Of a DNA stretch of 64,000 nt, positions 39,131 through 59,694 are shown piece by piece; position 1 is the first letter of the stretch; each line of letters opens with the position of its first letter. The position numbers were made by a program, and so were the translations under genes. Location: positions 124,001-188,000 of IMG/VR virus record IMGVR_UViG_3300024308_000302. One strand, given 5' to 3'. Under the pieces are notes generated by a model. That model was given only the letters and a program-made list of their open reading frames with translations. It was not told the DNA's origin and searched no databases.

Positions 39131-39213
39131 GGGATGGAGAAACCTCTCAACATCCCCTAGTGACACGCCCCGCGACACCGCTGTCACCTCGCACCCTTTA
39201 GCGGATGCCCCAC
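39131..39213 (-). ncRNA. Structured three-hairpin RNA, copy 1
   Basis: Homologous to 59608..59694 with compensatory changes. Confidence 0.75.
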
Positions 39214-39282
39214 AAGTCTTTCATGTTCTGTATGTTGCTTATAATATCAAACTTTGAAGCTTTAGTCAACATCTTTTTAATT

Positions 39283-39356
39283 AGGCTCCGTGGTCTGGAT
39301 TCGAACCAGAGACTCCCCCTAATCGCGGAGTTGTTTTACCACTAAACTACCACGAA
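39283..39356 (-). pseudogene. Atypical tRNA (loop GCGAUUA, 3' end GCCU)
   Basis: TTCGTGG/CCACGGA acceptor, good D and T arms, no U33 and no encoded CCA. Confidence 0.55.
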
Positions 39357-39652
39357 ATAACATCTTGTTTCAATGTGTGTATAATATCAAAAAATAGAAA
39401 ATAAGTAAAGATATTTATTATAAAAAATATCTAACAACATATCAATTATAATAGTTTTTTTTAATTTAAAATCATGGAAATAATTTAATAAAATTTATGA
39501 TAAAGTATAGATTATGCTTAAAAAATAAAATTTTATTTTGTGTCATGGTGGTTTCTTTACTTATATAAAAAATGCTTTTAAATCAATTTAATTTAATTTG
39601 ATTTATTTTAAAAGTATATTAAAATATAAATATAACAACATCTAATATAAGC

Positions 39653-40192
39653 ATGAAAAAGAAAATAATAAAAATAATAAGTACATTTAGTTTAATAATT
39701 GTAAGCAACCATGTTATAGCAAAAGACTATTATATGCATATACCTCTTGAGAAAGACCAAATAATAATTGGAAATGAAAATGAAAATAGTCAGGAAGGTA
39801 ATAATGGAGTTGGACAAGAACCGGGAGAAACTTGTTCCAATAGTTTTGCCTATGTAGGAAAAGAATCTTTCGATATAACATATAGTGCAGGAATGATAGT
39901 TTTTACATTAAAAAATACAACTGGTTATGATTCATATACATCAATGATTGGTAAAAGTTTTGTAAAATTATTAGTTGTTACAGAATTACAGGGAATATCA
40001 AGTCATACTGCTGGAGCATTATTAGTGGAAGGGACTCCATTACAGTACACAGTTCGTTCTGGAGAATCAATCAAGATGACAATAACACCTAAATCATACA
40101 ATATGGAAACATTTGAAGAGTGTGCAAGCGGAATACCAGTAGAAGTTATTAATGCAACATATGATCAAATAACAAATTTGCCGTCTAATTAA
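39653..40192 (+). CDS. Secreted protein, K(I/V)PLE family (divergent)
   Basis: Signal peptide then KDYYMHIPLE..QIIIG. Confidence 0.75.
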   Translation: MKKKIIKIISTFSLIIVSNHVIAKDYYMHIPLEKDQIIIGNENENSQEGNNGVGQEPGETCSNSFAYVGKESFDITYSAGMIVFTLKNTTGYDSYTSMIGKSFVKLLVVTELQGISSHTAGALLVEGTPLQYTVRSGESIKMTITPKSYNMETFEECASGIPVEVINATYDQITNLPSN

Positions 40193-40228
40193 AAAGGAAG
40201 CATAAGCTTCCTTTTTTTAATTAAGGAA

Positions 40229-40912
40229 TTAAGAGTTGTAGCCTCGTAGCTGTTCAAACCCAGCTTTGAAACCTTTTTTAACAAAGTCTTTTGCATCAAT
40301 TTTGTTAATGAAACGTTGTCCATAGCTTAAATTATCAGTGCCAAGGAACAAAACAACCCAATCAAGACCTTTAATGTTCTCATCTGTGTCTGTATCAAAA
40401 AAATGCCCTTTTCTTTCCATAATAAAAACTGGAACATAAGCTTTTTTATTGTCATTAACAAAAGACATATAAGAAAGCTGGCAATAATTAGATAAAATTT
40501 GATGATTATATGAATTAGGTACTTCAATATATCCTACAAAACTACCATCAAAATAGGAACTAAAATCAGAACCCCAATCTTTCAAATCAGCAACATCATT
40601 ATTACAAAGTTCAAGAGGAATGCCAGAGTTTTTAGTCAAAGACTCAATATCTTCATTTGTAATAGTTTTAACACTATCCATAAATGATTGAAGATTTTTT
40701 GTGTCAGTATAATTGGGTTCTCGCAAAATATTGCCCACTTTTCGCTCAACCCGTTGACCTAACATATCTACAACTTCACACACAACAGATTTATCATTCT
40801 CAAGAAGAATACCAGTACGCTCAAAGAAATCTTCTGATGATTCAGCAAGGATTTCAACAGCAACAACGTGCTTGCCCCAGTTCATATAAACCTTACGACC
40901 AATAACTTGCAT
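40229..40912 (-). CDS. Hypothetical protein
   Basis: Start revised to MQVIG (GAGG SD). Confidence 0.75.
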   Translation of the reverse strand: MQVIGRKVYMNWGKHVVAVEILAESSEDFFERTGILLENDKSVVCEVVDMLGQRVERKVGNILREPNYTDTKNLQSFMDSVKTITNEDIESLTKNSGIPLELCNNDVADLKDWGSDFSSYFDGSFVGYIEVPNSYNHQILSNYCQLSYMSFVNDNKKAYVPVFIMERKGHFFDTDTDENIKGLDWVVLFLGTDNLSYGQRFINKIDAKDFVKKGFKAGFEQLRGYNS

Positions 40913-40990
40913 AATTAAAACCTCATAGGAGTTTGAGAATATGAGTATATTATAGCAAAAAAACATTGCTATTGGAAGCTATTGTTTAGA

Positions 40991-41725
40991 TTAAAATTCT
41001 GCCATTTCAAGGACAGACATATCTGTTTTCAACAAATTTAAGTTTTCACCATACGTATTCATCCAATTTAATAAAAATTTAACAAAACTAACAATATCTT
41101 GATTTACAATTGATGGATGACTTCCCTCAAAAACCTGATAAAAACTATCATTAGCCCTATGATATTTTGACATAAAATAATTGAAGTAATAATGAACATC
41201 TTTGTTATAAACAAAAAATTGTGATAATTCTGGAAGTTTATTAAGTTTGAATTTTATTAATGGATCTTCTGCAATATGCCAATACATCAGAATAGAAAGA
41301 TGGGCGTCTTTATCAAACGAATAATGAATATCTATACAACTTAGTGCAAAATTATCATGAGAATGTTGAACACCACCAATAGTATAGCTATTTTTAGCAA
41401 TTGCTGATAAATAGTTAAAATTATTATCAACATTGATAGTGACATTATAAAAGAATGAATTAATTCCTTTAAATAAGTTATCATGATCGAAGTTAAAAGA
41501 AACTTGTAAATTGTCTTCATAGAGAAGAACAATTACATAACCATAAGGATATTCATATTCTAATCCATAGTTGCTATGGGCACAATTAAATGAAAAATCT
41601 TTTGAACAAACATCAATAGAACAAACCTTATTGAGTAAAAATGAAAGTTGTTGCCTGATAAACTTGTGATGCTCACCAGACAACTTTAGATTATTTCTTT
41701 TGAAATCAGAAAACAGTGACATCAA
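40991..41725 (-). CDS. Hypothetical protein, C-terminal motif family
   Basis: Ends MSVLEMAEF. Confidence 0.72.
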   Translation of the reverse strand: MMSLFSDFKRNNLKLSGEHHKFIRQQLSFLLNKVCSIDVCSKDFSFNCAHSNYGLEYEYPYGYVIVLLYEDNLQVSFNFDHDNLFKGINSFFYNVTINVDNNFNYLSAIAKNSYTIGGVQHSHDNFALSCIDIHYSFDKDAHLSILMYWHIAEDPLIKFKLNKLPELSQFFVYNKDVHYYFNYFMSKYHRANDSFYQVFEGSHPSIVNQDIVSFVKFLLNWMNTYGENLNLLKTDMSVLEMAEF

Positions 41726-44811: not shown

Positions 44812-44895
44812 TGGTGCCCGGAGCCGGACTCGAACCGGCACGGCTTTCGCCGGAAGATTTTAAGTCTTCTGTGTCTACCATTTCACCATCCGGGC
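44812..44895 (-). tRNA. tRNA-Leu(UAA) copy 1
   Basis: GCCCGGA...CT-TAA-AA, long variable arm, ACCA. Confidence 0.95.
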
Positions 44896-44963
44896 ATAAA
44901 CAAAGATAACTCTTTGTTAACGGATATATTTTAAAAGATTTAAGTTAAATAATCAAGTTTTAA

Positions 44964-45278
44964 TTAATTATTTTTTGTCATTCTCGCTTTTAAAGTCTCT
45001 GCACCGAAAATAAAAGAATCAAACATCATTTTGAATTCTTCAATAAGTGTGTCTTCTGGAACTGAAAGAATACGTTCGTAAATTACTCGAAAAGCATGAT
45101 ACTGACCACAGCCAAGCTTTTGGTGCAGCAAAAAAGATTCTTTAAAACATGCAATTTTAAAATCACCCGGAGCAAGCTCAACCAAGCGACCAGACATATC
45201 AGAAAATTTTTCTTCAATGTCATCTGCAACAGAATTGACAAAAACAAGATCAGAAACAGAAAGTGGTGACATATTCAT
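44964..45278 (-). CDS. Hypothetical protein
   Basis: HQKLGCG motif. Confidence 0.7.
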   Translation of the reverse strand: MNMSPLSVSDLVFVNSVADDIEEKFSDMSGRLVELAPGDFKIACFKESFLLHQKLGCGQYHAFRVIYERILSVPEDTLIEEFKMMFDSFIFGAETLKARMTKNN

Positions 45279-45308
45279 TTTTTAGACCTTTTCTAATATT
45301 AAGAAATT

Positions 45309-45393
45309 TGGTGCCCGGTGCCAGACTCGAACTGGCACGGATTTCGCCGGAAGATTTTAAGTCTTCTGTGTCTACCAATTTCACCAACAGGGC
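45309..45393 (-). tRNA. tRNA-Leu(UAA) copy 2 (one acceptor mismatch)
   Basis: GCCCTGT/ACCGGGC; CT-TAA-AA. Confidence 0.9.
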
Positions 45394-45399
45394 ATAATT

Positions 45400-45476
45400 T
45401 GGCCCATGCGGCAGGACTCGAACCTGCGACCATCCGCTTAGAAGGCGGATGCTCTATCCAACTGAGCTACGCACGG
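45400..45476 (-). tRNA. tRNA-Arg(UCU)
   Basis: CCGTGCG...CT-TCT-AA...CGCATGGGCCA. Confidence 0.95.
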
Positions 45477-45485
45477 ATGTTTGTC

Positions 45486-45614
45486 TTAGGCGTCCTGATG
45501 ACGATTGCGGCGTTTGTCACGGAATTTACGGTCATTTTTCGCAAAATTGCGGGTTTCTTTGTCACGACCCTTGGAAGTGAATTTTTCGGTCATATCGCGG
45601 TGAGAACCTTGCAT
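45486..45614 (-). CDS. 42-aa basic peptide, paralog of 47022..47156
   Basis: MQGSHRDMTEKF...KRRNRHQDA; AAGGA SD. Confidence 0.75.
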   Translation of the reverse strand: MQGSHRDMTEKFTSKGRDKETRNFAKNDRKFRDKRRNRHQDA

Positions 45615-45770
45615 TTCGTATTTCCTTGTATGTTTCGTTTTGATGGCTCCATTATAGAGAAATTGGTACTGCATGTAAAGCATTATTTTCGTTTTTTCTA
45701 AATTGTTTTTGATTGATTTTAAACAATAAATTAAAATAAACCAGAGGGCAGATTTAATAGAACCTGAAAA

Positions 45771-46106
45771 CTACAGGTTCATAGCTGACAACTTATGCCG
45801 AGCGAATTCTAAGACTTCTGCAAGTTCAAAACCATCCAAATCACCAAGATGAGCCACAACATGTGGATTGCGAGATGCCCACAGATCACCTTCTTTTTTA
45901 ATCACTGTAGTGCCTTCTGTAGCTCCCCAACCAGCAATCACCGTGCCACGGCAAGCAAAGCCTGTATGACAAACACTGGAACTGCCATCAGCAAAAATGA
46001 TTTCTTTGGGTTCATCAGACATAATAACACCCCAAACATTTTTACTGCAGAGAGCTAGAGCATATTTTTTAATTGTCAGACTTGTGATGTTTTTTACTTG
46101 AGTCAT
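45771..46106 (-). CDS. Hypothetical protein
   Basis: 111-aa ORF. Confidence 0.7.
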   Translation of the reverse strand: MTQVKNITSLTIKKYALALCSKNVWGVIMSDEPKEIIFADGSSSVCHTGFACRGTVIAGWGATEGTTVIKKEGDLWASRNPHVVAHLGDLDGFELAEVLEFARHKLSAMNL

Positions 46107-46247
46107 GTGAAAATACCTATATATCGTTGATTTAATAAAGTAATTTTGGTAAAAATTAGAATTTGAAGCAAGAAGTTTGAATTATACCATATTGAATAAT
46201 CGTAAGCAAAAAAAATCTGGCTAAAACCAGATCTTTAAATTATTGAT

Positions 46248-46610
46248 TTAGGTTACTGCAATTTGATTTGTATATTTTCGTTGATTTTTATAAATGTCAT
46301 TCGCCTTTTCTTCACTGATTTGAACAAGATTGATAAGGGGAGCGTTTTCAAAGACATTATAAAACCAATCAGAAACAGCCTGAGTATAAGTATATCCGGG
46401 GACACAAGAAACTCTTTTAAATTTCAGAATAGGACGGCCACGACCATCAACAACTACGCTCTTAGAAATATACAAAGGAGAGTCTTTTCCTGCATCAGCA
46501 TCAACAAAGAAAGTTGAACCAATGTAAGGATTATTGTTATAACAGATGAACACATAACAAAAACAACCCAAAAGGAATAGAGCACACACAATAAAAATCA
46601 ATGTTGGCAT
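46248..46610 (-). CDS. Membrane-anchored hypothetical protein
   Basis: N-terminal TM; GAGGA SD. Confidence 0.7.
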   Translation of the reverse strand: MPTLIFIVCALFLLGCFCYVFICYNNNPYIGSTFFVDADAGKDSPLYISKSVVVDGRGRPILKFKRVSCVPGYTYTQAVSDWFYNVFENAPLINLVQISEEKANDIYKNQRKYTNQIAVT

Positions 46611-46905
46611 AATTTAATCCTCTTATTGTTCAATTTTTTAAATGTTATAAAGCTAAACTGATATTCAAGAGTATGGTAAAATTTACAAAAGTTGAATGAA
46701 CAGTTGCGAGAGGTTTATTTTATCAAAAAATGACACAAAATACAACAATAAGTGATGAATTCACACAAAAATTAAATAACAAAAAACCCCTTCTAAGAGG
46801 GGCTGTTCAATCTCTATTAATTAGTTTTCTATAAGTAACTTACTGAATGGATAGCTTACATTTTGAACGTTCATTAATTATCAGTAGTTTTATTGTAGTT
46901 GAATT

Positions 46906-46989
46906 TGGTGCCCGAAGCCAGACTCGAACTGGCACGGCTCTCGCCGGAAGATTTTAAGTCTTCTGTGTCTACCATTCCACCATTCGGGC
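46906..46989 (-). tRNA. tRNA-Leu(UAA) copy 3
   Basis: GCCCGAA...CT-TAA-AA...TTCGGGCACCA. Confidence 0.95.
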
Positions 46990-47021
46990 TTAAAAATGGT
47001 CTACCGTAGTAGACCTGTTAA

Positions 47022-47156
47022 TCAGTCTGCGTCTTTATGACGGTTTCGGCGTTTATTGCGTCGGTTACGATCTTCTCGATGAGCACGAGCTTTTTCTGGA
47101 TCTTTTTGTTTACGGCCACTGAAACGTTCTGTTGCATCACCATAAGAACCTTGCAT
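47022..47156 (-). CDS. 44-aa basic peptide (not in ORF track)
   Basis: MQGSYGDATERFSGRKQKDPEKARAHREDRNRRNKRRNRHKDAD; GAGGA SD. Confidence 0.75.
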   Translation of the reverse strand: MQGSYGDATERFSGRKQKDPEKARAHREDRNRRNKRRNRHKDAD

Positions 47157-47247
47157 TTTTTACATCCTCTTTTTTGGGTAATCTTTGTAACTTTGTAGCT
47201 TTATATTATCAACGTTTTTTTAAATGTGCAAGCTTTTTTTTGCAATT

Positions 47248-47466
47248 TTAAGTCAATTTTTGTGCAGCATCGTAGGCAAGTGCAAATGTACGGAAAGCGT
47301 CAATCTCAACAGCTTCACCACCATGAGTTGGAATCTCAAAAAGATGGAAAAGACCACCATCACGGATTTCAATATACCACCCATCATCAATATATGGGGC
47401 ATTTTGAACAATCATATGGCCAGTTGACGGATCAAAAAAAGAAAAAAGCGGAATATTAGTAGACAT
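47248..47466 (-). CDS. Hypothetical protein
   Basis: GAGGTG SD; LFEIPTHGG. Confidence 0.75.
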   Translation of the reverse strand: MSTNIPLFSFFDPSTGHMIVQNAPYIDDGWYIEIRDGGLFHLFEIPTHGGEAVEIDAFRTFALAYDAAQKLT

Positions 47467-47554
47467 AAATCACCTCATAATTTAAACCTATAATAGCATA
47501 AAACACTATAAATTCAAGAAAAAAATTTTGGTGAGGTCTTTATTGTGTTTGAAA

Positions 47555-48550
47555 TTAAATAGAATACATACTGAGCAACATTAAAGTGTCTTCTGACAGT
47601 GGCAATGCAGGTGAAATATCAATCTCTTTTAACATTCTAATCGTTTGCATTGATGGGTATCTTGATAAACAATAATTATATCTGGACATGTAAACTTTTT
47701 TAAATTTATTTACATAGTCAATATAATCATTATTGAGGTACTGTTTATATTGAATAGATAATGTACCAGACTCATATGTTATAATCATGAATCTATCATA
47801 AGATTTAACAGAAGAGTCTGACTTATCACTATCAGATGGATGATGTTCAACAATAAGCTCATACTTTCGTCCATTTTTATACAACAAACATGGATTGTAG
47901 TCATTTTTAAGAATTCTAACTTTTTTTGTATCAATGTATTTTTCAAAACTAATAGCTATATCACGCACAGCTTCCATTGATGTAAAATCACTGAATCGGC
48001 CAACTTCAAAAATCAACTTATCAGCAATATAAAAGTGAGCTTTATTTAAGATGGAACCTGTTTTTGAAAGTAGACAAAAAGAGATACGCTCAACACCAGT
48101 AACAACTGTTTTTTGTAATATTTTAATTTCTGGATAATAATTTTCATCTAAAGTAAGTAAGTTAGGGACTTTAGATAAACTTTGAGAATCGTTGCCTGTC
48201 AATAAGTCCATTAAATCTGGATGATTGTTAAACACGCCTACATAACGATTTTTTAAATAAGGAAAAACAGAAGAATCCATTGTTAAAAGTATGTTTTTAT
48301 TAATACATTCCATAATGAAATCTTGATGATTTAAAGATGATTCATACTTCATACAATAATCCATAGAAACTTGACTAACAAAATCTTTTATACTTAAAAA
48401 TAAGAAGCCATCTAAAAATGTAGCGTTAGCTAATAGATTATTATTTAATTTCAATGAATAGGAATTATTAGTAAATTCTTTAATAGAAGATACAACTGAA
48501 TCTACGTCCTCTTTTTTCTTGAAATAATCCTTTAACTTATTTAAAAACAT
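47555..48550 (-). CDS. Hypothetical protein, C-terminal motif family; paralog of 57692..58852
   Basis: Ends PS...PLSEDTLMLLSMYSI. Confidence 0.75.
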   Translation of the reverse strand: MFLNKLKDYFKKKEDVDSVVSSIKEFTNNSYSLKLNNNLLANATFLDGFLFLSIKDFVSQVSMDYCMKYESSLNHQDFIMECINKNILLTMDSSVFPYLKNRYVGVFNNHPDLMDLLTGNDSQSLSKVPNLLTLDENYYPEIKILQKTVVTGVERISFCLLSKTGSILNKAHFYIADKLIFEVGRFSDFTSMEAVRDIAISFEKYIDTKKVRILKNDYNPCLLYKNGRKYELIVEHHPSDSDKSDSSVKSYDRFMIITYESGTLSIQYKQYLNNDYIDYVNKFKKVYMSRYNYCLSRYPSMQTIRMLKEIDISPALPLSEDTLMLLSMYSI

Positions 48551-48661
48551 AATAATATTAAATGTGCATGATTATAGTATGCAACATAATAATACTTTTT
48601 CAAATAAAAAAGCCAACATTGAATGCTGGCTTATTAATGGAATTATTTAATTAGAAAAGTG

Positions 48662-48913: not shown

Positions 48914-48922
48914 TACACATAC

Positions 48923-50165: not shown

Positions 50166-50166
50166 G

Positions 50167-50682
50167 TTAGATTTCCAGATTTAAATGCATACGCATAAGG
50201 TGTCTAACTCTTGAGATCTCTTCAATAATCCAATCATATTGAGGAACAGTAATGATTTTTGCATTTTGCTGATCTTTACCAAAATAATAATAATGAACAA
50301 GAGGCAATGTTGAATAGGTCAATTCTTTAAGGATATCTTTATTTTGACGAAGTTTACAACGAATGGCTTCACAAACGTCTTCTTTGAAATAATAAGAAAA
50401 AATACCAGAACTGTCATCGTCTTTTACAGGAAGAAGTTTACGACCTAATTCTTTTGCAGCAAGTCCATAGGTCAATTTGATTTCTTCTGAATCAATGCCA
50501 TGTTCCAAAAGAAGACGGAAATACCAAAAGGCTTCTACTGATGCAAATTTACCATATTTGGGATGAACAAAATAACTACGATTAAAGTTAGTTAGCTTTT
50601 TGCCAAGAGCAGTTTTACCACGACTAAACACATTGATGTGATCGACGCCATCATTCAAGGGCGAAAGGATTATGTTTGTCAT
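50167..50682 (-). CDS. NADAR-like protein
   Basis: LTNF...FASVEAFWY...AAKELGR...IRCKLRQNKDILKEL pattern. Confidence 0.6.
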   Translation of the reverse strand: MTNIILSPLNDGVDHINVFSRGKTALGKKLTNFNRSYFVHPKYGKFASVEAFWYFRLLLEHGIDSEEIKLTYGLAAKELGRKLLPVKDDDSSGIFSYYFKEDVCEAIRCKLRQNKDILKELTYSTLPLVHYYYFGKDQQNAKIITVPQYDWIIEEISRVRHLMRMHLNLEI

Positions 50683-50745
50683 AATTAGCTCCTTGTCAAA
50701 TCAGAATTATAACATAATATCAATCGAAAATAAAGAAAAACCCGC

Positions 50746-51318
50746 TTAGAGCGGGTTATCATTCACTTCAACTACACAAGGTTTAATGATGCCTGAATCA
50801 AGCAAAATATCAAGTTCAGTTTTACCAGTGCCTGCCCAAGCAGCAGTTCGAAGATTTTTCGGAGCATCAGGGGTCATGTGAACCACAACAAGACCAGAGC
50901 TTTCAACGCGACCATGATAGCTGGAACATGCTTTCATACGGAGTTCATACAGTTCATCTACCGAAACTTTACAAGCGTAAAGGTGAGTATTTTGAGTAAG
51001 GCGTTTTCCAGTCATATGATGAGAACAAATTAGGGTAAGGTCTTCTGCATTTGGTGTATGCCCAATTTCTTCACCAGACTCACGAAGTGCAGCAGTAATG
51101 AGGTCTTCACCTTCATCTACCTGACCACCCACAAAGCCCATACTACCATCCCAACGAACCATAACACCAAGCAGAGAAACTTTAGCAAACCATGCACCTT
51201 CACCCCATTTGCGGCAGTCTGGGTTAGTTTGATACAGGTGGGTTGGGTCAGCATAAAATGCAATGAACACAGAGTTTTTGTCAGCCATAGTGCCATTAGG
51301 AACGCGGGATACTTGCAT
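50746..51318 (-). CDS. Nudix hydrolase, NUDT16-like
   Basis: MVRWDGSMGFVGGQVD...ALRESGEEIG Nudix box; THLYA. Confidence 0.85.
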   Translation of the reverse strand: MQVSRVPNGTMADKNSVFIAFYADPTHLYQTNPDCRKWGEGAWFAKVSLLGVMVRWDGSMGFVGGQVDEGEDLITAALRESGEEIGHTPNAEDLTLICSHHMTGKRLTQNTHLYACKVSVDELYELRMKACSSYHGRVESSGLVVVHMTPDAPKNLRTAAWAGTGKTELDILLDSGIIKPCVVEVNDNPL

Positions 51319-51372
51319 GGTAAATCCTCAATGATTAATGTAGATCTATTATAATATATCCTGAATAATCAA

Positions 51373-52164
51373 TCAACACCTATTTGGGGATTTTGATTCA
51401 TGCAGGCCATATTTGACAACAAAATCACAAAAGTCAGCATAAGTGATTGAGCCACCTTTTGAGAATAGCTGATTCAAATCTTCTGAAAACGAACGATGGA
51501 GAACAGTCAGATCAACTGGATAGATTTTATTGATGTTTATATTTTGCATATAGCGAGTAGTTTTTTCTAAATTATGCTCAAATTCAAGCTCAATACTTTC
51601 TGCAATCTTAATAATATCATTTTTTCCAATGTGGTGAATACCACTAAACATAGCACCAGATTCAAAGATCCAATGACGTTCAATCAACTTATCTCGATAT
51701 TTCTTACAAGACAACTCAATAACATCTTTCATATCAGACAAGGCATCAAAAATATTTTTTATATCACCATCTTTTACAGCACTATTAAAACCATCAACTT
51801 CATAAGAATCATTAGTATTAAAATCAATGCAATCCATAACGTCAGATTCATGGTCGCATCCATAGACAAGATTATGTAGGAGAGCCACTGTAAATTGATG
51901 ATGCAGTTGAGATTTTAATTCCATTTCAGCTAGCCTCATCTTATAGGTGTTAGATGTTTCTACCAAAACATCATAATTGATAGTCTCAACAAATTTTGGC
52001 ATAAAAGTTTTTACAAAATTATCAAAATCTGGGCCAATAAGATATAAAGGATCATGTGTATTATAGCTATCTACCCAAAAATAAGTAGCACGAGCAGCGA
52101 CTACACCAGACATAAGGTATAGCTGAGGATTGGTCAAAGAACAAATATCAGTAACTCTTGTCAT
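51373..52164 (-). CDS. Hypothetical protein
   Basis: 263-aa ORF. Confidence 0.75.
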   Translation of the reverse strand: MTRVTDICSLTNPQLYLMSGVVAARATYFWVDSYNTHDPLYLIGPDFDNFVKTFMPKFVETINYDVLVETSNTYKMRLAEMELKSQLHHQFTVALLHNLVYGCDHESDVMDCIDFNTNDSYEVDGFNSAVKDGDIKNIFDALSDMKDVIELSCKKYRDKLIERHWIFESGAMFSGIHHIGKNDIIKIAESIELEFEHNLEKTTRYMQNININKIYPVDLTVLHRSFSEDLNQLFSKGGSITYADFCDFVVKYGLHESKSPNRC

Positions 52165-52292
52165 AGATAACCTTTATTAAATTAAAATGGTTGAATTTTC
52201 AATATTCAACCAATTTGGTTGTTAAAAAAAACAATAAAATTTTACTTTTGTCAAGTTTAAAATAGAATTTTTATTCAAATAATTCAATTATT

Positions 52293-52502
52293 TTAAAGAT
52301 CTGTGAATCCACCATAGCCATTTTGCGGATAATGGTCATTTTCAAGCTTGCTCAACGCTGCCTTACGTTTTTGTTCGATAAATGCGGTCGATGAAAAAAT
52401 GGACTTGTTTTTTAATTCATTATCGTATGTTTGATTGATTTGCTGTTTTTCACTACGATAATGATCTTGTGCAGAATAACCAGAATCAGAATTGCTCATC
52501 AT
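52293..52502 (-). CDS. Small hypothetical protein
   Basis: AGGAG SD. Confidence 0.6.
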   Translation of the reverse strand: MMSNSDSGYSAQDHYRSEKQQINQTYDNELKNKSIFSSTAFIEQKRKAALSKLENDHYPQNGYGGFTDL

Positions 52503-52600
52503 ATAATAAATACTCCTTAAACAATAAAAATAATATCAAATAAATAAAAAAAAGGCAATAAAAAAGCCATCATTAGATGGCCTTTTAAACAACCTACATA

Positions 52601-52915
52601 TTAACTTTCGAAAAGCTCACCAATTTTGAGAGCCATCATCATATCTCCTTCGATACGGAGCTTACCACTCATGAAAGCCTGCATACCGTCAAGTTCACCA
52701 GTAGACATAGCATACAGGGTGTCTGAATCAGCTACAAAGGTAGTAGTCGATTCCTTTGGAGCAGTTTCAACAACAGTACAGGCAGAATTTTTAATTTGCA
52801 AGTAGAAGTCTTTGTCATCAGGAACATTGAAATGATAAATCAGATCAAGACCAGAAGCCGCTTCTGCGTTGAATTTAGCAATGAAATTGGTTTGTGCTTG
52901 TGCTGTTTTAGACAT
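52601..52915 (-). CDS. SCP2 sterol/lipid carrier domain protein
   Basis: KFN...GLDL...GELDGMQAFMSGKLRIEGDMMMALKI. Confidence 0.9.
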   Translation of the reverse strand: MSKTAQAQTNFIAKFNAEAASGLDLIYHFNVPDDKDFYLQIKNSACTVVETAPKESTTTFVADSDTLYAMSTGELDGMQAFMSGKLRIEGDMMMALKIGELFES

Positions 52916-52936
52916 ATTGTTTCTCCACGATTAATT

Positions 52937-53023
52937 TGGTGCCCAAAGCCAGACTCGAACTGGCACTCCGATTAAGGAAAGGGATTTTAAGTCCCCCGCG
53001 TCTACCGATTTCACCATTTGGGC
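52937..53023 (-). tRNA. tRNA-Leu(UAA) copy 4
   Basis: GCCCAAA...CT-TAA-AA...TTTGGGCACCA. Confidence 0.95.
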
Positions 53024-53065
53024 GTGCGACTATTCTAATAAAGAATATTAAAACAGTCAATACTT

Positions 53066-53305
53066 TTATGATTTTTCTTGAGATTTTTTGAGTTGATGTT
53101 CTGCATCAAGCTCACGAATAGCAATATCCATTCTCATTCGATCAAGAACAGTGCTCTTTGCAATATCATTAGCATCAGCAATTTGATAAGGATTCAAAAA
53201 AGTTTCAAGATAAGCTAATGCTGTATTCCGGTCAGCCTCATTCATGAAACTCAACATCAATTGGCCACGGTTGAGGTCCAATTCAGTCTTGTCAATTTCA
53301 AGCAT
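53066..53305 (-). CDS. Hypothetical protein
   Basis: GAGG SD. Confidence 0.7.
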   Translation of the reverse strand: MLEIDKTELDLNRGQLMLSFMNEADRNTALAYLETFLNPYQIADANDIAKSTVLDRMRMDIAIRELDAEHQLKKSQEKS

Positions 53306-53439
53306 AATAACCTCTACACCTTATCCGTTGATTGGATGTGTAGTATAACAATATTCTGAAACATGGTCAATCATTAATGATGCGGATTATAGCAAAATTT
53401 TCTCAAAGTTAGCAAGTTAATTCTGTGATTTTGGAGCAG

Positions 53440-54051
53440 TCATTTGTATCGATAGGAAGTCACACGCTGACCTTGGACAAAATGATAAATATCAGTAACA
53501 ACAGAATCTACATATTCAACATAATGTATGCCAAGTGTATTAATGCTTTTGTTATTATATTGTCTGGTATGGATTTGTTTTATCTTGTCATCAATATAAA
53601 TATAAGATGCATACCAATAACCTTTATTTTTATCAACTTTTAAAGATTCCATAATTCGACCATTAACACAAATAACTTCTGATATTGAATAAACCCCATA
53701 ATTTAAATCTAAATCTACTTCAAAAATAGAATCATTCTCTTTAAAATAATAAATAGTATTTGTTTGAACTTGCTGCTTATCAGTAATTGTAATTTGAGCA
53801 ATGAAATCATCAATCATACGATGTTCATACAATGAAGTATATGTAAGAGGCTTAACTCTCAGATATTTAGAATGTTTCACATCCACTAACTCAAGCCCTA
53901 ATGGCTCAAGAGAATAGGTTAAATCTTTAGACCAGAATATTCTGTTGAAAGTAGTTGGTGCTTCATTAATAACTTTTTTAATAAATTCTGGATCTTTTAT
54001 TTTTAAAGAGAAATCATCTATTTTATGTTTAATATCATTCACTGTTAGCAT
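53440..54051 (-). CDS. Hypothetical protein
   Basis: 203-aa ORF. Confidence 0.7.
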   Translation of the reverse strand: MLTVNDIKHKIDDFSLKIKDPEFIKKVINEAPTTFNRIFWSKDLTYSLEPLGLELVDVKHSKYLRVKPLTYTSLYEHRMIDDFIAQITITDKQQVQTNTIYYFKENDSIFEVDLDLNYGVYSISEVICVNGRIMESLKVDKNKGYWYASYIYIDDKIKQIHTRQYNNKSINTLGIHYVEYVDSVVTDIYHFVQGQRVTSYRYK

Positions 54052-54204
54052 AATTATAATGTAATCATTTTGATATTAGTTTAAGTGAAAAGAATGAAAA
54101 AATCAAATATCAAAACAATACATTACAAAAAATATCATATAACAAATTGTATTATTTTAAAATAGATATATAATGATAAATATATATAATAATTTGGGTG
54201 CGAC

Positions 54205-54972
54205 ATGAATAAATCAAAATTAAGTTTCCCAGCAATAGTTGTTTGTATGTTAAGTTACAATGCTTCAAATGCAGCATATGTAGCAAAAGTTCCATTAGAG
54301 ATTCCACAAGGTGGATCGCTACCATATAATAGTATAATAATTGGTTCAGGTAATAAAGAATTAGATTTCGATCCACCTGATCCATTACCCACAGATGATG
54401 GTGTTGTATGCGAATACAATCTAACCAATTCTCCTAATATATCTGTTTATACAGATGGAATAATGAAGAGTCCTGATAATGAATGGATATCCTATAAGGA
54501 GATTTATTATCAAGGACAAAAAGTAATCAATGCTTTTAAAGGCAAAGAAATATTTAGACAAAATGATGAAATGTATAATATAGGTTACTATGAAGTATGT
54601 ATACAAGGTTCTCCATTATATAGTAATCAAAATAATGAAGTAGAAAATCAAGAATGGGATCAAGATGATTGTAGATATAATAACGAAACGGGAACTCAAT
54701 ATTCTTGGACTACCACCACTACAAGTGATGGTAGATATGCATTCCTGAATGCAAGTCTAGGAAGCTTTGGATATGTTACAGCAAATAGTAGTAATATAAT
54801 ATTCCCAGTAGGTACTATAACTGTACCAGAGGGAAAAATATTACCAGAAGGAAAGCAAAGAATAATAATAGGGAACACTGCATTTGATAGAGGTAACTAT
54901 TATGGATCTGTAAATATAGGTAATAATGTTTTCCAAAGCAAATATGAAGTATGTAAAAAAACAGGAAAATAA
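54205..54972 (+). CDS. Secreted protein, K(I/V)PLE family
   Basis: Signal peptide then AYVAKVPLEIPQGGSLPYNSIIIG; two C..YN..YEVC modules. Confidence 0.8.
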   Translation: MNKSKLSFPAIVVCMLSYNASNAAYVAKVPLEIPQGGSLPYNSIIIGSGNKELDFDPPDPLPTDDGVVCEYNLTNSPNISVYTDGIMKSPDNEWISYKEIYYQGQKVINAFKGKEIFRQNDEMYNIGYYEVCIQGSPLYSNQNNEVENQEWDQDDCRYNNETGTQYSWTTTTTSDGRYAFLNASLGSFGYVTANSSNIIFPVGTITVPEGKILPEGKQRIIIGNTAFDRGNYYGSVNIGNNVFQSKYEVCKKTGK

Positions 54973-55004
54973 AAAAAGCCATCAAAAGATGGCTTTCTTA
55001 TTAA

Positions 55005-55358
55005 TCATGTTTCGTTATCTTTTAAAATTTGACATAGCCAGCTTGATGCATCATTAAGATGAGATTCACCAGCGTCAATTTCATCCAGAAGCTTTCGGAA
55101 AGTATCAATATCGTTACAGCGTTCTTTTCGTGTATTTGTAAGCAGTTCAATAGCATCCGCTTTACCAGTTAGATCATCTGGTGATGAACTAAGCGTTGTC
55201 AGAACTCGATCAATACTAATTAAGTCATCACGAACTTTTTTGTAAAGCTTATCAATTGTTTGTCGAATTTCATATAATTTGAAATTAGATTTACCAACAA
55301 GATCATTTGATTCTTTAATAGCTTTTAGTACAAGTTTTTGCATGAATGATAACTCCAA
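55005..55358 (-). CDS. Hypothetical helical protein
   Basis: 117-aa ORF. Confidence 0.65.
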   Translation of the reverse strand: MELSFMQKLVLKAIKESNDLVGKSNFKLYEIRQTIDKLYKKVRDDLISIDRVLTTLSSSPDDLTGKADAIELLTNTRKERCNDIDTFRKLLDEIDAGESHLNDASSWLCQILKDNET

Positions 55359-55574
55359 TTAAATAATAGTCTCAAATCTATCAGAAATGTGATAACCATT
55401 AAGTTTAAGCCAATGTTTAATTTTCCCAGAGTCGTGCTCATGAAAAGTTTGTAATTGCTTGGTTCTCTCAGCATCCCAAAGAATAAAAAGACCTGAGCCG
55501 TATGAAGCAAGATATTCCAGACAAGCTGGTGTTGTGATTGGTTTTGAAAAAATAGATAGGAATTTTTTAAACAT
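55359..55574 (-). CDS. Hypothetical protein
   Basis: Start revised to MFKKF (AGGAG SD); the track extension overlaps tRNA-Leu(CAA). Confidence 0.7.
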   Translation of the reverse strand: MFKKFLSIFSKPITTPACLEYLASYGSGLFILWDAERTKQLQTFHEHDSGKIKHWLKLNGYHISDRFETII

Positions 55575-55609
55575 ATTTATTGAAACTCCTTTAGGTATTA
55601 TTTGAAAAT

Positions 55610-55693
55610 TGGTGCCCAAGGTCGGACTCGAACCGACACGTCTTTCGACAGAGGATTTTGAATCCACCGCGTCTACCATTCCACCACTCGGGC
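55610..55693 (-). tRNA. tRNA-Leu(CAA)
   Basis: GCCCGAG...TT-CAA-AA...CTTGGGCACCA. Confidence 0.93.
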
Positions 55694-55839
55694 TAAAAAT
55701 TCTACCCGCTGCGTAAGCTAAAAGCGTCCTCACACTGAAACACAAGTGTTAATGGCGATTTTGCTATTAACTTGCAACACACTAGTCAATTCGGTGTCCA
55801 ATGAGATTGGATTCAGCAAATTGAACGGCGTAGAAAAAC

Positions 55840-55914
55840 TGGTGCTAAGGACGGGATTCGAACCCGTGACCATCGGATTTAGAGGCCGTTGCTCTGCCGC
55901 TGAGCTACCAAAGC
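55840..55914 (-). tRNA. Amber suppressor-type tRNA(CUA), copy 1
   Basis: Loop CT-CTA-AA; acceptor GCTTTGG/CCTTAGC, ACCA. Confidence 0.85.
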
Positions 55915-55980
55915 ATGTTATTACTATCACTTGTTTTGTTGAGCCATTATACAACAAGACCCAACAAGAAACAAGTATTT

Positions 55981-56328
55981 TTATCGTTTAATTGCGACTT
56001 CCGTATCCCAATCCACTTCAACTCGCTGATTTTCATCGAAATCATAAAGACCTTCATGTCCAGATATTGATTCAATGTAAAGAGTTCGTTCACCACCTCG
56101 CCAACGAGCACTCCAGCTATCAGTATCAAAAATATCAATCAGAATATCTTTTAATGTAGGATACTTTTGTTTAAAAGACTTCCAACTCTTGTCAATCAGG
56201 ATTTCATCAACATGACCACCATTATTACCGAGTTCGGTGGCCCTCATGATACATTGATATTTTTTTGTGCCACGAATTCTGGTTTCTTCAAAGGTTATAT
56301 CTAAACCAATTTCTTCATTCAGAGCCAT
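55981..56328 (-). CDS. Hypothetical protein, YPxLK paralog family
   Basis: EETRIRGT...SWKSFKQKYPTLKDIL...GHEGLYDF. Confidence 0.8.
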   Translation of the reverse strand: MALNEEIGLDITFEETRIRGTKKYQCIMRATELGNNGGHVDEILIDKSWKSFKQKYPTLKDILIDIFDTDSWSARWRGGERTLYIESISGHEGLYDFDENQRVEVDWDTEVAIKR

Positions 56329-56351
56329 AGCAAAATCTCCATGTATAAATT

Positions 56352-56428
56352 TGGTGGGACTTGTAGGACTTGAACCTACGACCTGCCGATTATGAGTCGG
56401 ACGCTCTAACCAACTGAGCTAAAGTCCC
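56352..56428 (-). tRNA. tRNA(CAU), probably Ile2 (lysidine, reads AUA)
   Basis: GGGACTT acceptor; CGA-CTCATAA-TCG and TTCAAG resemble ileX. Confidence 0.85.
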
Positions 56429-56434
56429 GTAATT

Positions 56435-56845
56435 TTACATCAAACTATCAGCATAAAGCTTTTTGTGTTGATCTACAACACAACCAAAAGAATCTTCATA
56501 CAGATAAACAGATGATTTAATGGTTTCAATTGGTCTTGCCAACTCTGAATACATCAAAGTGTCAACACGATATCCACCACGCCCATTTTTACCTTTCCAA
56601 AGCTCCCAAACAAGTACAGCAAGCGTACCAATTTTGAAAACTTTTTCAGGTTTAAAGCTGCTCACATAATCTACACAACCAAAACCAGCAGCTATATGAA
56701 CTTTAATACCTTTTGGATTAACCTTTACTACAGTGCCAGAACATAACGAATAATCAATTAAGACTTTAACATCATCACCAATAGACAATGTTTTAGTTTC
56801 AATAATTTGTTTGATATGTTCTTCATATAGCATAATGTTATCCAT
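56435..56845 (-). CDS. Hypothetical protein
   Basis: WELWKGKNGRGGYR motif. Confidence 0.75.
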   Translation of the reverse strand: MDNIMLYEEHIKQIIETKTLSIGDDVKVLIDYSLCSGTVVKVNPKGIKVHIAAGFGCVDYVSSFKPEKVFKIGTLAVLVWELWKGKNGRGGYRVDTLMYSELARPIETIKSSVYLYEDSFGCVVDQHKKLYADSLM

Positions 56846-56848
56846 AAT

Positions 56849-56923
56849 TGGTGTTAAGGGTGGGATTCGAACCCACGACCATCGGCTTTAGAGGCCGCTG
56901 CTCTACCGCTGAGCTACCAAAAC
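56849..56923 (-). tRNA. Amber suppressor-type tRNA(CUA), copy 2
   Basis: Loop CT-CTA-AA; acceptor GTTTTGG/CCTTAAC, ACCA. Confidence 0.88.
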
Positions 56924-56968
56924 ATTTATTCTATAAATAAGATACAATTAAAGCATATTTATATAAAC

Positions 56969-57053
56969 TGGTGCCCGGTGCCAGACTCGAACTGGCACGA
57001 CTTTCGCCGGAAGATTTTAAGTCTTCTGTGTCTACCGATTTCACCAACCGGGC
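56969..57053 (-). tRNA. tRNA-Leu(UAA) copy 5
   Basis: GCCCGGT/ACCGGGC; CT-TAA-AA. Confidence 0.95.
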
Positions 57054-57331
57054 GTAAAAAATGAATTAAAAATTTGCGTGTGTCGAACTTAACTTTACAA
57101 CACAATCTGATTTACCCAGAGCCTTAGCTAGCCCTGTCTTCACAAGAAGAAAACACACCTAACTCTACAAGAAGTCAGATTTGGTAACTGAATACCTGTG
57201 AAACCATATTGTTGTAAAATAATATCCTTTTTTTCAACCCCTTCGTTTGGGCTGTCAACGTAACATCCGCTGAATAACACCTATATACCTGCAACTGGAT
57301 ATAGTTACAACTTTTTAACTCATTGCAAAAC

Positions 57332-57417
57332 TGGTGCCCGAAGCCGGACTCGAACCGGCACTCCGATTAAGGAAAGGGATTTTAAGTCCCCCGCGTCTAC
57401 CATTTCACCACTCGGGC
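57332..57417 (-). tRNA. tRNA-Leu(UAA) copy 6
   Basis: GCCCGAG...CT-TAA-AA...TTCGGGCACCA. Confidence 0.95.
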
Positions 57418-58852: not shown

Positions 58853-58919
58853 AATAGATCCCAAAAATTAAATTTATAGAACCTTCATGATATCATAATT
58901 TTTGTAGGCTTACTAGATA

Positions 58920-59198
58920 TTAATCGCCACGAAAAACAAAATTGCTTGGTGGTAAAGATTTAGAAGGGCCTTCTTTATCAGCCAATGGTTGAATGGTGTA
59001 TAAAACGGTATCCCAGCTTTGATACTGAGTGTTAAACATATAGAGTTTTTTTGTTCTCATGTTCTGTTTGTAATTTTGATTATTGTGGTTATCAATGAAA
59101 TAAACAAAACCATCATAGATATAAGTACATTGAAGCGTTGATTTCGCTTTGTTTTCAACGGTTAAAAGATAAAGAGAGCCTTCATTATATGTTGTCAT
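58920..59198 (-). CDS. Hypothetical protein
   Basis: AAGGA SD. Confidence 0.7.
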   Translation of the reverse strand: MTTYNEGSLYLLTVENKAKSTLQCTYIYDGFVYFIDNHNNQNYKQNMRTKKLYMFNTQYQSWDTVLYTIQPLADKEGPSKSLPPSNFVFRGD

Positions 59199-59328
59199 TC
59201 CTTATACTCCATTAGAAAGGTTACAGGCAATTTGAAGATCAATCGCCTACATTTACATTATATAAAGATTCATATTTTTTACAAGGCCGTTTCAACAATA
59301 AATAAAATAAAAATTGTTTTTAGAAAAA

Positions 59329-59436
59329 GATAAACCTCTTCAAACTTACTTACACACATTAACATTAATAGAGCTGCTACCTTCCGGTCCTGACTCGGTT
59401 TTCAATGCAATGTTATAAGGGCCGAAGAGGTCTATC
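59329..59436 (-). ncRNA. ffs: Bacterial small SRP RNA (4.5S)-like gene
   Basis: 108-nt rod with 15-bp terminal helix and domain IV GAG-TCAGGACC-GGAA-GGTAGCAG-CTC. Confidence 0.9.
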
Positions 59437-59523
59437 ATTACAACAACAATAATAACAGAGATTCTAAAATATGCAAGCAAAAAAATAAAAAAAGCCACCA
59501 CAAGGTGACTTTATTTTTTAAGT

Positions 59524-59600
59524 TGGCCCAGCCAGCAGGAATCGAACCTGCAACCGTCCGCTTAGAAGGCGGATGCTCTATCCAATTGAGCTATGGCTGG
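59524..59600 (-). tRNA. tRNA-Arg(UCU)
   Basis: CCAGCCA...CT-TCT-AA...TGGCTGGGCCA. Confidence 0.95.
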
Positions 59601-59607
59601 ATAAGTT

Positions 59608-59694
59608 TGGAGCGGAGAAAACTTTCTCAACACTCCATCAGTGACACACCCCGCGACACCGCTGTCACCTTGTATCCTTTAGCGGATACCCCAC
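59608..59694 (-). ncRNA. Structured three-hairpin RNA, copy 2
   Basis: Homologous to 39131..39213. Confidence 0.75.

Follow-up and report, generated by a model that had tools for sequence, protein, structure and literature searches.

A covarying modular RNA, in places joined to tRNA genes, in a lineage of very large phage-like elements

What kind of RNA is encoded, in GC-rich copies of about 85 nt, just ahead of tRNA genes in a 290-kb viral record, and what could it do there? The purpose of the big tRNA islands found in very large phages is a matter of debate, and the few structured RNAs described in them (GOLLD, ROOL and the small RNAs of phage T4) are still without a function. Two copies of such an element, 20 kb apart, had been noticed in the window, by which we mean the whole 64,000-nt stretch of DNA analysed here. 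We looked at their fold, their relatives, their surroundings and their likeness to catalogued RNAs.

Two copies and their fold

Both GC-rich copies claimed by the original prediction were found, copy A at 39213-39130 and copy B at 59694-59608, each on the minus strand, which is also the orientation of all 20 tRNAs of the window. The minus strand was assigned because the G-U pairs of the helices would become A-C mismatches on the opposite one. Their likeness exceeds chance, with 85% identity over 78 nt (E = 1.8e-19 in a search within the 290-kb record), and the sequence differences between them are compensatory. Copy A is, at 68% GC, the 60-nt stretch richest in GC in a genome of 32% GC. As had been noted, the copies end 7-13 nt before a tRNA: a spacer of 12-13 nt separates copy A from the tRNA at 39117-39041, and one of 7 nt separates copy B from tRNA-Arg(UCU) at 59600-59524. 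The features of the two units are as follows.

39241..39269 (-): predicted sigma-70-like promoter for unit A, TTGACT and TATTAT spaced by 17 nt, a TG preceding the -10, its end 28 nt short of the element
39191..39208 (-): copy A hairpin 1, 6-bp stem GCAUCC/GGGUGC with the hexaloop GCUAAA
39159..39188 (-): copy A hairpin 2, 6-7 bp stem GUGACA/UGUCAC, whose near-invariant apex, A-GCGGUGUCGCGGGGCG, occupies 39166-39182
39130..39157 (-): copy A hairpin 3, outer stem GGGGAUG/CAUCCCU, UU bulge, inner GAGA/UCUC
39118..39129 (-): copy A tail, AU-rich and single-stranded, GACCUAAUUUCU, linking hairpin 3 to the tRNA
39041..39117 (-): tRNA after copy A, 8-nt anticodon loop (AUUUUGCC), ARAGORN anticodon 'tttg', CCA encoded, 51.8 bits with the Rfam tRNA model
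39015..39034 (-): intrinsic terminator at the end of unit A, 8-bp stem and then a run of T
59672..59689 (-): copy B hairpin 1, GUAUCC/GGAUAC with the loop GCUAAA
59640..59669 (-): copy B hairpin 2, apex A-GCGGUGUCGCGGGGUG
59608..59637 (-): copy B hairpin 3, UGGAGUG/CGCUCCA, UU bulge, GAGAA/UUCUC
59601..59607 (-): copy B tail, AACUUAU
59524..59600 (-): tRNA-Arg(UCU), immediately 3' of copy B
59491..59512 (-): intrinsic terminator at the end of unit B

The promoter of unit A is predicted from its consensus match only, 10 of the 12 positions agreeing, and four such sites were found against 1.4 expected from shuffles. Upstream of copy B, no strong sigma-70 match was present within 150 nt.

The helices originally drawn for the two copies are exact in every letter: hairpin 1 pairs GCAUCC/GGGUGC in copy A and GUAUCC/GGAUAC in copy B around GCUAAA, hairpin 2 pairs GUGACA/UGUCAC enclosing GCGGUGUCGCGGGG, and hairpin 3 pairs GGGAUG/CAUCCC in copy A and GGAGUG/CGCUCC in copy B with an inner GAGA/UCUC. 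Covariation in a larger alignment had been set beforehand as a check, and it was clear in the 13 distinct core sequences that we could align from 8 contigs. When the alignment was built blind to structure, 94.7% of cells paired and two-sided changes occurred in 11 of the 16 pairs, a result that none of 500 shuffles equalled; across alignments, 94.7-98.3% of cells paired, with 10-11 two-sided pairs, while registers slid out of place gave 28-50%. All six pairs of hairpin 1 are kept in the 13 sequences, five of them with two-sided changes, and the stem of hairpin 2 shows such changes in six of its seven pairs. RNAalifold, given the structure-blind alignment, recovered the same two hairpins. Hairpins 1 and 2 are thus strongly supported by covariation. 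The alignment draws on few independent lineages, the family being narrow (8 contigs).

Against these variable helices, some unpaired bases stand still. The loop of hairpin 1 has the consensus GNNAAA on a 6-bp stem that varies freely, and the apex of hairpin 2, A-GCGGUG..GGGC-R, has identical bases in the 13 sequences on a 6-bp stem that is likewise variable. About 14 nt of this apex stay unchanged among elements that share only 30-75% protein identity. The further proposal that CCGCU of hairpin 1 pairs with AGCGG of hairpin 2, as a pseudoknot or a switch, was not borne out: 78% of the cells paired, which is the shuffled mean, with zero two-sided changes in the 13 sequences. A pairing of leader and tail that would close a cloverleaf was dropped after a check by eye, being inconsistent between copies.

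A family of modular units in one lineage

A third copy (C) lies elsewhere in the 290-kb record, a fourth (D) on an independent metagenome contig, and six related large viral records contain two or three copies each, bringing the family to 13 distinct core sequences on 8 contigs. Members were defined with two models, R1 and R2, by a hairpin 1 with a GNNAAA loop, a hairpin 2 whose apex reads A-GCGGUG..GGGC, and an R2 score of more than 50 bits. The scores were 54-66 bits for copies A, B and C and 56-70 bits for the relatives; decoys picked because they carry the loop strings reached at most 19.6 bits, against 54-70 bits for members. The carriers form a single lineage of phage-like elements that are very large (160-440 kb) and highly divergent. 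Two large proteins searched for relatives had no close ones, the phage hallmark Terminase_6N was searched for and not found, and the sole link to a known phage is a weak match to an uncultured 642-kb phage. Code 11 was used throughout because no clear signal of stop-codon reassignment was seen.

The distribution is narrow. When viral contigs were scanned with exact and semi-degenerate patterns of the short form, the yield was nothing or one chance match in coding sequence, and neither the element nor a long-form unit had a blastn match among 50,697 phage records. In 185,579 prokaryote genomes the pattern returned chance matches only, in GC-rich genomes and without stems or tRNA. A scan for the signature of the M module described below retrieved no records beyond the six viral ones already known, and the invariant strings were not found printed in the literature. 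A 2023 catalogue of 8,495 unnamed candidate structures from IMG/VR could already include the present family (PMC10690425).

Comparison of the members also changed the picture of a self-contained unit of about 85 nt, since copies A and B proved to be the short form of a modular RNA. The order of modules is promoter, a short purine-rich leader, hairpins 1, 2 and 3, zero to two M modules and an AU-rich tail. The M module is a three-way junction of about 65 nt, present once or twice per RNA in the relatives, and two-sided changes occur in 16 of the 24 pairs of its fold. Copies A, B and D share the design of hairpin 3 with the relatives, the outer stems differing; it is missing from copy C and from two of the units labelled G002. 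The tail that closes units in the relatives, R-A-C-Y-U-W-A-U-U-U, is similar to that of copy A. The window holds two further pieces, of which the M-like module stands apart from copies A and B.

5915..5976 (-): M-like module, a three-way junction that contains ..AUAAAAC.. and has a GGUUGGGUGAACC hairpin (model R3, E = 2e-8)
5844..5914 (-): 'gamma' domain, three GC-rich hairpins, the middle one CCAA-GCG...GGGGCG-AAGGUC, read by eye

We tentatively regard 'gamma' as a possible distant relative of the 5' domain. It stands 5 nt before a weak tRNA at 5764-5837, and a near-identical second 'gamma' precedes a tRNA-Met at 114.9 kb of the genome. A scan with the core model R2 detected neither 'gamma' nor a domain labelled 'E', and both were therefore left out of the member count.

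The original description of the element as lying directly 5' of a tRNA holds for all copies of this genome, for copy D and for one G002 unit; it fails for most units of the relatives, in which further RNA modules are followed by a terminator or by the next promoter, and a tRNA is absent within 1.5 kb. Where the junction exists, the spacer from RNA to tRNA is 5-13 nt, single-stranded and free of terminators, and a terminator comes right after the tRNA. The tRNAs so joined are of five kinds (an odd UUG-type, Arg-UCU, Leu-CAA, Leu-UAA and Cys-GCA); the junction is therefore maintained by selection and does not stem from one segmental duplication. The record has 35 tRNAs, several of them with abnormal anticodon loops.

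In this genome a unit is made up of a promoter-like site, the RNA, one tRNA and an intrinsic terminator, in that order, and its predicted transcript is about 225 nt long. For copies A and C, and for every alpha, beta and G002 unit, no other structured element comes between a promoter-like site and the domain. Copies B and D are without a convincing sigma-70 promoter nearby; in copy D a homologous -10 box abuts hairpin 1, and a start there would truncate the hairpin. Units in five relatives have their own TATAAT boxes and a terminator, and contain neither a tRNA nor an open reading frame; in the alpha-beta arrays, the first unit is without a terminator. A 167-nt contig of a run labelled as RNA reaches from the terminator across the tRNA into the 3' part of copy A, and it proves nothing on expression.

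Comparison with catalogued RNAs

A comparison with Rfam 15 (4227 models, applied at gathering score or at relaxed E) had also been set beforehand, and no family in it matched the element. At gathering score, the whole window yielded tRNAs and one small SRP RNA only; with E allowed up to 10, the region around copy A had no match on the element, and four loci of relatives (E up to 1) and a composite locus (E up to 10) had none either. These results support the presence of a structured RNA accounted for by no catalogued family. ARAGORN and RF00005 call the neighbouring tRNAs, and neither the element nor the M modules.

Individual candidates were also considered. Short strings had suggested bacterial RNase P RNA (RF00010), which was rejected: no candidate was seen in the whole record at E up to 10, the model being detected in 11 of 14 control genomes, and the composite locus gave no match either. 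A likeness to the SRP Alu domain was set aside, as the order of hairpins is reversed and SRP models do not match the element. A TnpB guide RNA is unlikely, the sole IS605-type gene lying more than 80 kb away. Known self-cleaving ribozymes (hammerhead, HDV-like, twister, twister-sister, pistol and hatchet) were rejected as well, with no Rfam match at E up to 10 or 1.

Two kinds of phage RNA come closer in context. GOLLD and ROOL are encoded by phages and prophages, often by tRNA islands and sometimes with tRNAs inside or linked; they are supported by covariation, their partner protein and function are unknown, and at 500-800+ nt, with many pseudoknots, they assemble into multimeric cages (10.1101/2024.12.08.627333). 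The RNA described here resembles them as a covarying, tRNA-adjacent phage RNA and differs as a string of simple hairpins and three-way-junction modules, its units measuring 85-330 nt against 500-800+ nt, and neither family had an Rfam match in the window or in the relatives. The arrays associated with the reverse transcriptase (RT) UG27 are likewise modular, with ~150-nt units gained and lost in phages, each a single long hairpin with AUCNNNNNNNUANAG and UUYA, beside the RT and two accessory genes (10.64898/2026.09.22.753630). What they share with our units is the modular array of structured RNAs in phage genomes, and they differ in fold, in motifs and in the RT. A UG27-type array was rejected for want of an RT: with E allowed up to 0.01, PF00078 was found in none of five records, two of which are 96% complete or more, while the controls were detected. 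AUCNNNNNNNUANAG and UUYA were absent from the unit sequences read, in which short hairpins stand in a row together with a three-way junction.

Possible roles of the RNA

The functions first suggested for the element, namely a processing element, a ribozyme, an antiterminator or a protein sponge, are guesses that our results did not confirm. We propose, as a plausible though tentative reading, that the element is a small stable RNA, cut from a tRNA co-transcript by tRNA-processing enzymes and acting in trans through its invariant apex. The RNA and the tRNA would be made as one co-transcript; host RNase P would cut at the 5' end of the tRNA, and RNase E possibly in the AU-rich tail; a discrete stable RNA of about 100 nt would be freed, and it would then act in trans via the hairpin 2 apex, with protein binding as the most probable mode. 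The copies, the fold and its conservation, the modular layout, the linkage to different tRNAs and the lack of an Rfam match are established by the analysis, whereas transcription, processing, stability and the action on a protein partner are what we infer. Since units of the relatives have a TATAAT box and a terminator of their own, with no tRNA or open reading frame, the RNA itself would be a product and not a mere tRNA leader. The short single-stranded spacer, with no terminator before the tRNA, supports processing by tRNA enzymes, and the invariance of an apex of about 14 nt despite 30-75% protein identity supports trans action through it. Its sense-strand complements (9-mers) in the 290-kb genome number one, about the chance expectation, which favours protein binding over base pairing. 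We found no candidate for a protein partner encoded beside the RNA in both lineages. A 70-aa open reading frame recurs 0.7-1 kb from the arrays and matches only a family of unknown function. To be transcribed first after a promoter would suit a leader that acts in cis just as well.

The nearest precedent for the proposed mechanism, compared by description only, is found in the tRNA cluster of phage T4, whose small stable RNAs (species 1 and 2, rnaC/rnaD) are structured non-tRNAs, co-transcribed with tRNAs and freed by host tRNA-processing enzymes. To our knowledge, no function has been assigned to them. The lineages are unrelated, and the T4 RNAs lie within the tRNA cluster, whereas ours is the first element of a short promoter-to-terminator unit. 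The same 3'-end logic operates, by analogy only, in the eukaryotic, nuclear MALAT1-mascRNA transcript, where an RNase P cut at a downstream tRNA-like structure forms the 3' end of the upstream non-coding RNA; there the structure is a mimic, here it is a real tRNA.

The alternative that competes most is a cis-acting transcription leader, in which the nascent RNA would bind its own RNA polymerase and make it resist pausing, Rho or terminators, and the structured, untranslated genes that follow would thereby be transcribed to their end. The model for it is the put RNAs of phage HK022, cis-acting antiterminators of ~70 nt that stand just after phage promoters as two adjacent hairpins with conserved unpaired bases; by description only, copies A and C and the relatives are compatible with them in promoter position and two-hairpin shape. 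The promoter-proximal position noted above for copies A and C and for every alpha, beta and G002 unit speaks for such a leader, as do the two neighbouring hairpins, whose bases outside the helices are invariant, the wholly untranslated RNA that follows (M modules and tRNAs), and the lack of a terminator in the first unit of the alpha-beta arrays. However, put precedes long protein-coding operons and suppresses their terminators, whereas the units here are 100-600 nt, non-coding and mostly end in a strong terminator 100-250 nt downstream, leaving little to antiterminate, and read-through would defeat the terminators; moreover, the tentative gamma domains have internal positions, away from a promoter. 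We consider this leader rather unlikely. Somewhat less probable again is a helper or shield directed at tRNAs, which would guide or delay maturation of the attached tRNA or serve as a decoy for tRNA-cutting host defences; the element's investment in tRNAs and RNA repair is heavy. The canonical copies here, copy D and one G002 unit abut varied tRNAs at 5-13 nt, the record has 35 tRNAs, several with abnormal anticodon loops, and it encodes a T4-type RNA ligase 1, an enzyme that in T4 repairs nuclease-cut tRNA. But the RNA is found on only 3-5 of ~36 tRNAs of the record, most units of the relatives have no tRNA at all, the ligase gene is distant from every copy, and the RNA itself shows no resemblance to a tRNA.

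Of the remaining explanations, a new class of self-cleaving ribozyme trimming the transcript beside the tRNA would fit the small size (50-85 nt), the mostly non-helical invariant bases, the tandem phage-like context typical of small ribozymes and the lack of a match to any known class. We judge it very unlikely, as independent hairpins in a row offer no supported multi-helix junction or pseudoknot for an active site, hairpin 3 is dispensable (copy C and two G002 units) and RNase P would cut at the tRNA regardless. A riboswitch or ligand sensor controlling the downstream tRNA or RNA seems slightly less credible even than this: the highly conserved, pocket-like apex and the promoter-proximal position would suit it, and hairpin 3 could be an expression platform, but no U tract follows hairpin 3, which some units do not have, alternative pairing is unsupported, the downstream genes are non-coding and differ among units, and no Rfam riboswitch matches. 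The lowest probability falls to a functionless selfish or relic repeat, left for instance by a mobile element or by recombination, which would fold by chance. The narrow distribution and the abundance of transposases and homing endonucleases in the region speak for it; against it, compensatory changes preserve both stems despite sequence divergence, the apex is invariant among elements at 30-75% protein identity, the repeat is always oriented with transcription, and terminal repeats and target duplications are absent.

A broader speculation, less probable than the cis-acting leader and a little more so than the tRNA shield alone, is that the invariant two-hairpin domain would be a new RNA class acting on the tRNA economy of the infection, either as a decoy that binds a protein or nuclease and shields the element's own tRNAs from tRNA-cutting host defences or as a new small ribozyme that matures them, with M as a second new structured module shuffled among several small RNAs of these elements. 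The family is small and cleanly defined, with a 14-nt invariant motif, a simple and easily synthesised fold and natural short and long forms, and these properties make it a tractable handle on the non-tRNA RNAs of phage tRNA islands. The locus was also near-identical in sequencing runs of 15 studies covering many habitats; the carrier is therefore common and might be culturable.

Copies, fold and specificity of the RNA

We found that the repeated element belongs to a structured RNA family that is real, well supported, apparently uncatalogued and narrow in distribution. The two repeats on which the original prediction was built (copies A and B) share 85% identity (E = 1.8e-19), and re-reading of the sequence gave their three hairpins exactly as first described. 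In both, the sense strand of the element is the minus strand, and no other 60-nt stretch of the record is as GC-rich as copy A. Two further copies are listed with them ("genome" marks coordinates in the whole record).

Copies of the RNA and the tRNA genes that follow them
Window 39213-39130 (-): copy A; 12-nt tail, then a tRNA at 39117-39041
Window 59694-59608 (-): copy B; 7 nt, then tRNA-Arg(UCU) at 59600-59524
Genome 40234-40300 (-): copy C, from a GC-island scan; 7 nt before tRNA-Leu(CAA)
Independent 2.6-kb metagenome contig: copy D, found by the three-copy consensus pattern; 9 nt before tRNA-Leu(UAA)

Copy C is divergent, with hairpin 1 fully compensated (GUAGAC/GUCUAC) around an unchanged GCUAAA loop and hairpin 3 absent, while in copy D two pairs of hairpin 2 are compensated. 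The three-copy consensus pattern gave chance matches only in 185,579 prokaryote genomes. Three related viral records were reached via a second motif that is repeated in the lineage and three more via a subfamily pattern, and covariance models from the copies detected two or three units per record in these six relatives, which have many proteins in common with the window's record (30-75% identity). Members score 54-70 bits with the model, and decoys that carry the loop strings do not exceed 19.6 bits.

Covariation, proposed as a check in a larger alignment, was present among 13 distinct cores (hairpins 1 and 2). In the model-fitted alignment 98.3% of cells were paired, with two-sided changes at 10 of 15 pairs; a structure-blind MAFFT alignment gave 94.7% and two-sided changes at 11 of 16 pairs, a pairing equalled by none of 500 shuffles and falling to 29-49% in slid registers. 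Hairpins 1 and 2 were independently predicted by RNAalifold, and hairpin 3 keeps one design wherever it is present, with differing outer stems. The pseudoknot also suggested at the outset, pairing CCGCU of hairpin 1 with AGCGG of hairpin 2, did no better than shuffled columns and showed zero two-sided changes. As hairpin 2 has an invariant apex in the 13 cores, covariation cannot choose between the two predicted apex folds, and either an inner GCG/CGC stem or a G-rich loop closed by G-C/C-G may form.

We also compared the element with known RNAs. In agreement with the expected novelty, it gave zero Rfam 15 matches at any threshold tried. Identity with RNase P RNA was rejected by covariance-model search, a tRNA-like identity because neither ARAGORN nor RF00005 calls the element, and a UG27 reverse-transcriptase array because five records contain no reverse transcriptase and the unit design differs. 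The invariant motifs were not found printed in the literature; the 8,495 unnamed candidate structures catalogued from IMG/VR in 2023 (PMC10690425) could already include this RNA.

Modular units and their link to tRNA genes

In the relatives, the 5' domain (hairpins 1 and 2) begins about 13-20 nt after a TATAAT box and precedes hairpin 3, after which come one or two modules of about 65 nt, which we call M. Each M is built from a closing helix, one hairpin, the linker UGAUUAAAAC and a second, 5-bp hairpin with the loop R-G-G-Y-G; of the 24 pairs in its fold, 16 change on both sides. Considering that the relatives' units carry these further modules, the 85-nt element is a short form of a modular RNA.

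Every unit is closed by an AU-rich tail. The position directly 5' of a tRNA, assigned to the element originally, holds for copies A-D and for one unit of the related record G002; in the other units the tail is followed instead by the next promoter or by a terminator. In the window's genome the RNA is joined to five different tRNAs, with a short single-stranded spacer between; the RNA family as a whole does not share this linkage, which is particular to this genome. A promoter-like site (TTGACT-17-TATTAT, with TG upstream) ends 28 nt ahead of copy A, and a strong terminator lies directly after the tRNA of this unit. Unit B also has a terminator, and a search near copy B found no strong promoter match. 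The homologous -10 box of copy D directly adjoins hairpin 1, so that start sites are uncertain.

Copies of M without the core lie at window 5915-5976 (-) and genome 114.96 kb, and G002 has one in a further small RNA unit. Both M copies of the window's record are adjoined by GC-rich three-hairpin domains (gamma), which the core model does not recognize and which we therefore regard only tentatively as distant relatives of the core. These M copies lie in composite non-coding units, whose gamma domains are near-identical and were matched by neither Rfam nor the core model.

Composite non-coding units
Window 5764-5976 (-): M-like module, gamma domain, weak tRNA (29.5 bits), terminator
Genome 114792-115640 (-), longer: promoter, "E" domain, M, gamma domain, tRNA-Met

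Possible release and function

Since the relatives' units hold nothing but this RNA, we consider it a product in its own right. The short single-stranded spacer and the terminator placed after the tRNA make release by tRNA-processing enzymes the simplest reading: the RNA would be co-transcribed with the tRNA and freed by RNase P, perhaps with an RNase E cut in the tail. In the T4 tRNA cluster, small stable RNAs are likewise released from a co-transcript, and the niche of the RNA is the same as that of GOLLD, ROOL and the T4 small RNAs. The element's own genome held no apex-complementary target beyond chance, which, together with the invariance of the apex, points to a protein partner that the apex may contact; no protein gene travels with the RNA in the neighborhoods compared.

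Release from a tRNA co-transcript with a protein-bound apex is thus the account we tentatively favor, at somewhat below even chances. That the element acts in cis, as a put-like leader, is rather unlikely, and a role as helper or shield for the attached tRNA has a still smaller chance. We consider a new ribozyme quite improbable, a riboswitch even more so, and a functionless repeat the least probable of all.

The carrier and other elements of the lineage

The window covers bases 124001-188000 of a 290,157-bp IMG/VR virus record (32% GC; the minus strand carries all 35 tRNA genes), which is classed as a provirus with 96% completeness (CheckV) and recurs in a 1.54-Mb metagenome contig at about 268-558 kb. 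Only about 20 of its 113 ORFs of at least 170 aa have any family match, among them an endolysin, a virion structural protein, a protease, IS605/TnpB transposases, DEDDh exonucleases and a T4-type RNA ligase 1. Terminase_6N was searched for and not found; "huge phage" is the database's label for the carrier, backed by a few phage genes, rather than a proven identity. Long ORFs lie mostly on the strand of the tRNAs (157 of 183 on the minus strand). Contigs with near-identical locus DNA (window 37000-41000) come from sequencing runs of 15 studies, with metagenomes of subsurface, food, soil, silage, freshwater, wastewater and plant origin and several single-organism-labelled runs, which shows that the carrier is widespread. 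The ligase (Pfam RNA_lig_T4_1 E = 4e-27; phrog_562 E = 1e-66) and a metallophosphoesterase are common to both near-complete records, so that a capacity for RNA repair may accompany the tRNA islands.

Genes and RNAs of note
Window 18645-19997 (-): Na+/H+ exchanger, cell-like (E = 1e-59)
Window 35218-36126 (-): MYG1-family exonuclease, cell-like (E = 2e-49)
Window 15268-16476 (-): HNH homing endonuclease, listed with the cell-like genes (phrog_559, E = 2.5e-82)
G000:66576-67160 (-), outside the window, and G002:363206-363790: T4-type RNA ligase 1
Window 59334-59429 (-): 4.5S-type small SRP RNA gene (58.7 bits; gathering score 40)
Window 39041-39117 (-): tRNA after copy A, 8-nt anticodon loop AUUUUGCC
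Genome 35401-35477: odd tRNA "ga"
Window 55840-55914 (-) and 56849-56923 (-): tRNAs with CUA anticodon
Window 59735-59775 and 59915-59955, genome 59312, 59102, 58999, 36486, 36383 and 32806 (all -), L046:1535-1565 and 1640-1672: second repeated motif

The second motif, R-GTGCC-N-GAGGTGA-R-C-N5-ATGCAG, has eight copies in the record, every one of them on the coding strand, and is also present in L046 and three related records. Copies B and D each have two instances of it upstream. A strong Shine-Dalgarno sequence is followed after 7 nt by ATG CAG, at most one further codon and a stop, so that the motif reads as a putative mini-ORF of 2-3 codons (MQ*, MQH*, MQI*), reminiscent of the lambda bar minigenes; a lineage-specific promoter or an RNA motif would be an equally good reading. 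The SRP RNA gene, unusual in a phage-like element, lies just downstream of the unit of copy B and tRNA-Arg and its terminator.

With 51.8 bits, the tRNA that follows copy A is a good match to the tRNA model, and ARAGORN gives it a 4-base anticodon, "tttg"; another odd tRNA, "agaa", stands in G002 at the place of the window's tRNA-Ser(AGA). The two CUA-anticodon tRNAs would read the TAG stop, and open-frame counts allowing read-through of each stop did not clearly point to recoding. The tRNA set, on one strand, is extremely redundant in the window (44812-57417 (-)) and in the whole record, with at least 11 tRNA-Leu(UAA), 6 tRNA-Met(CAU) and 4 tRNA-Arg(UCU) among the 35.
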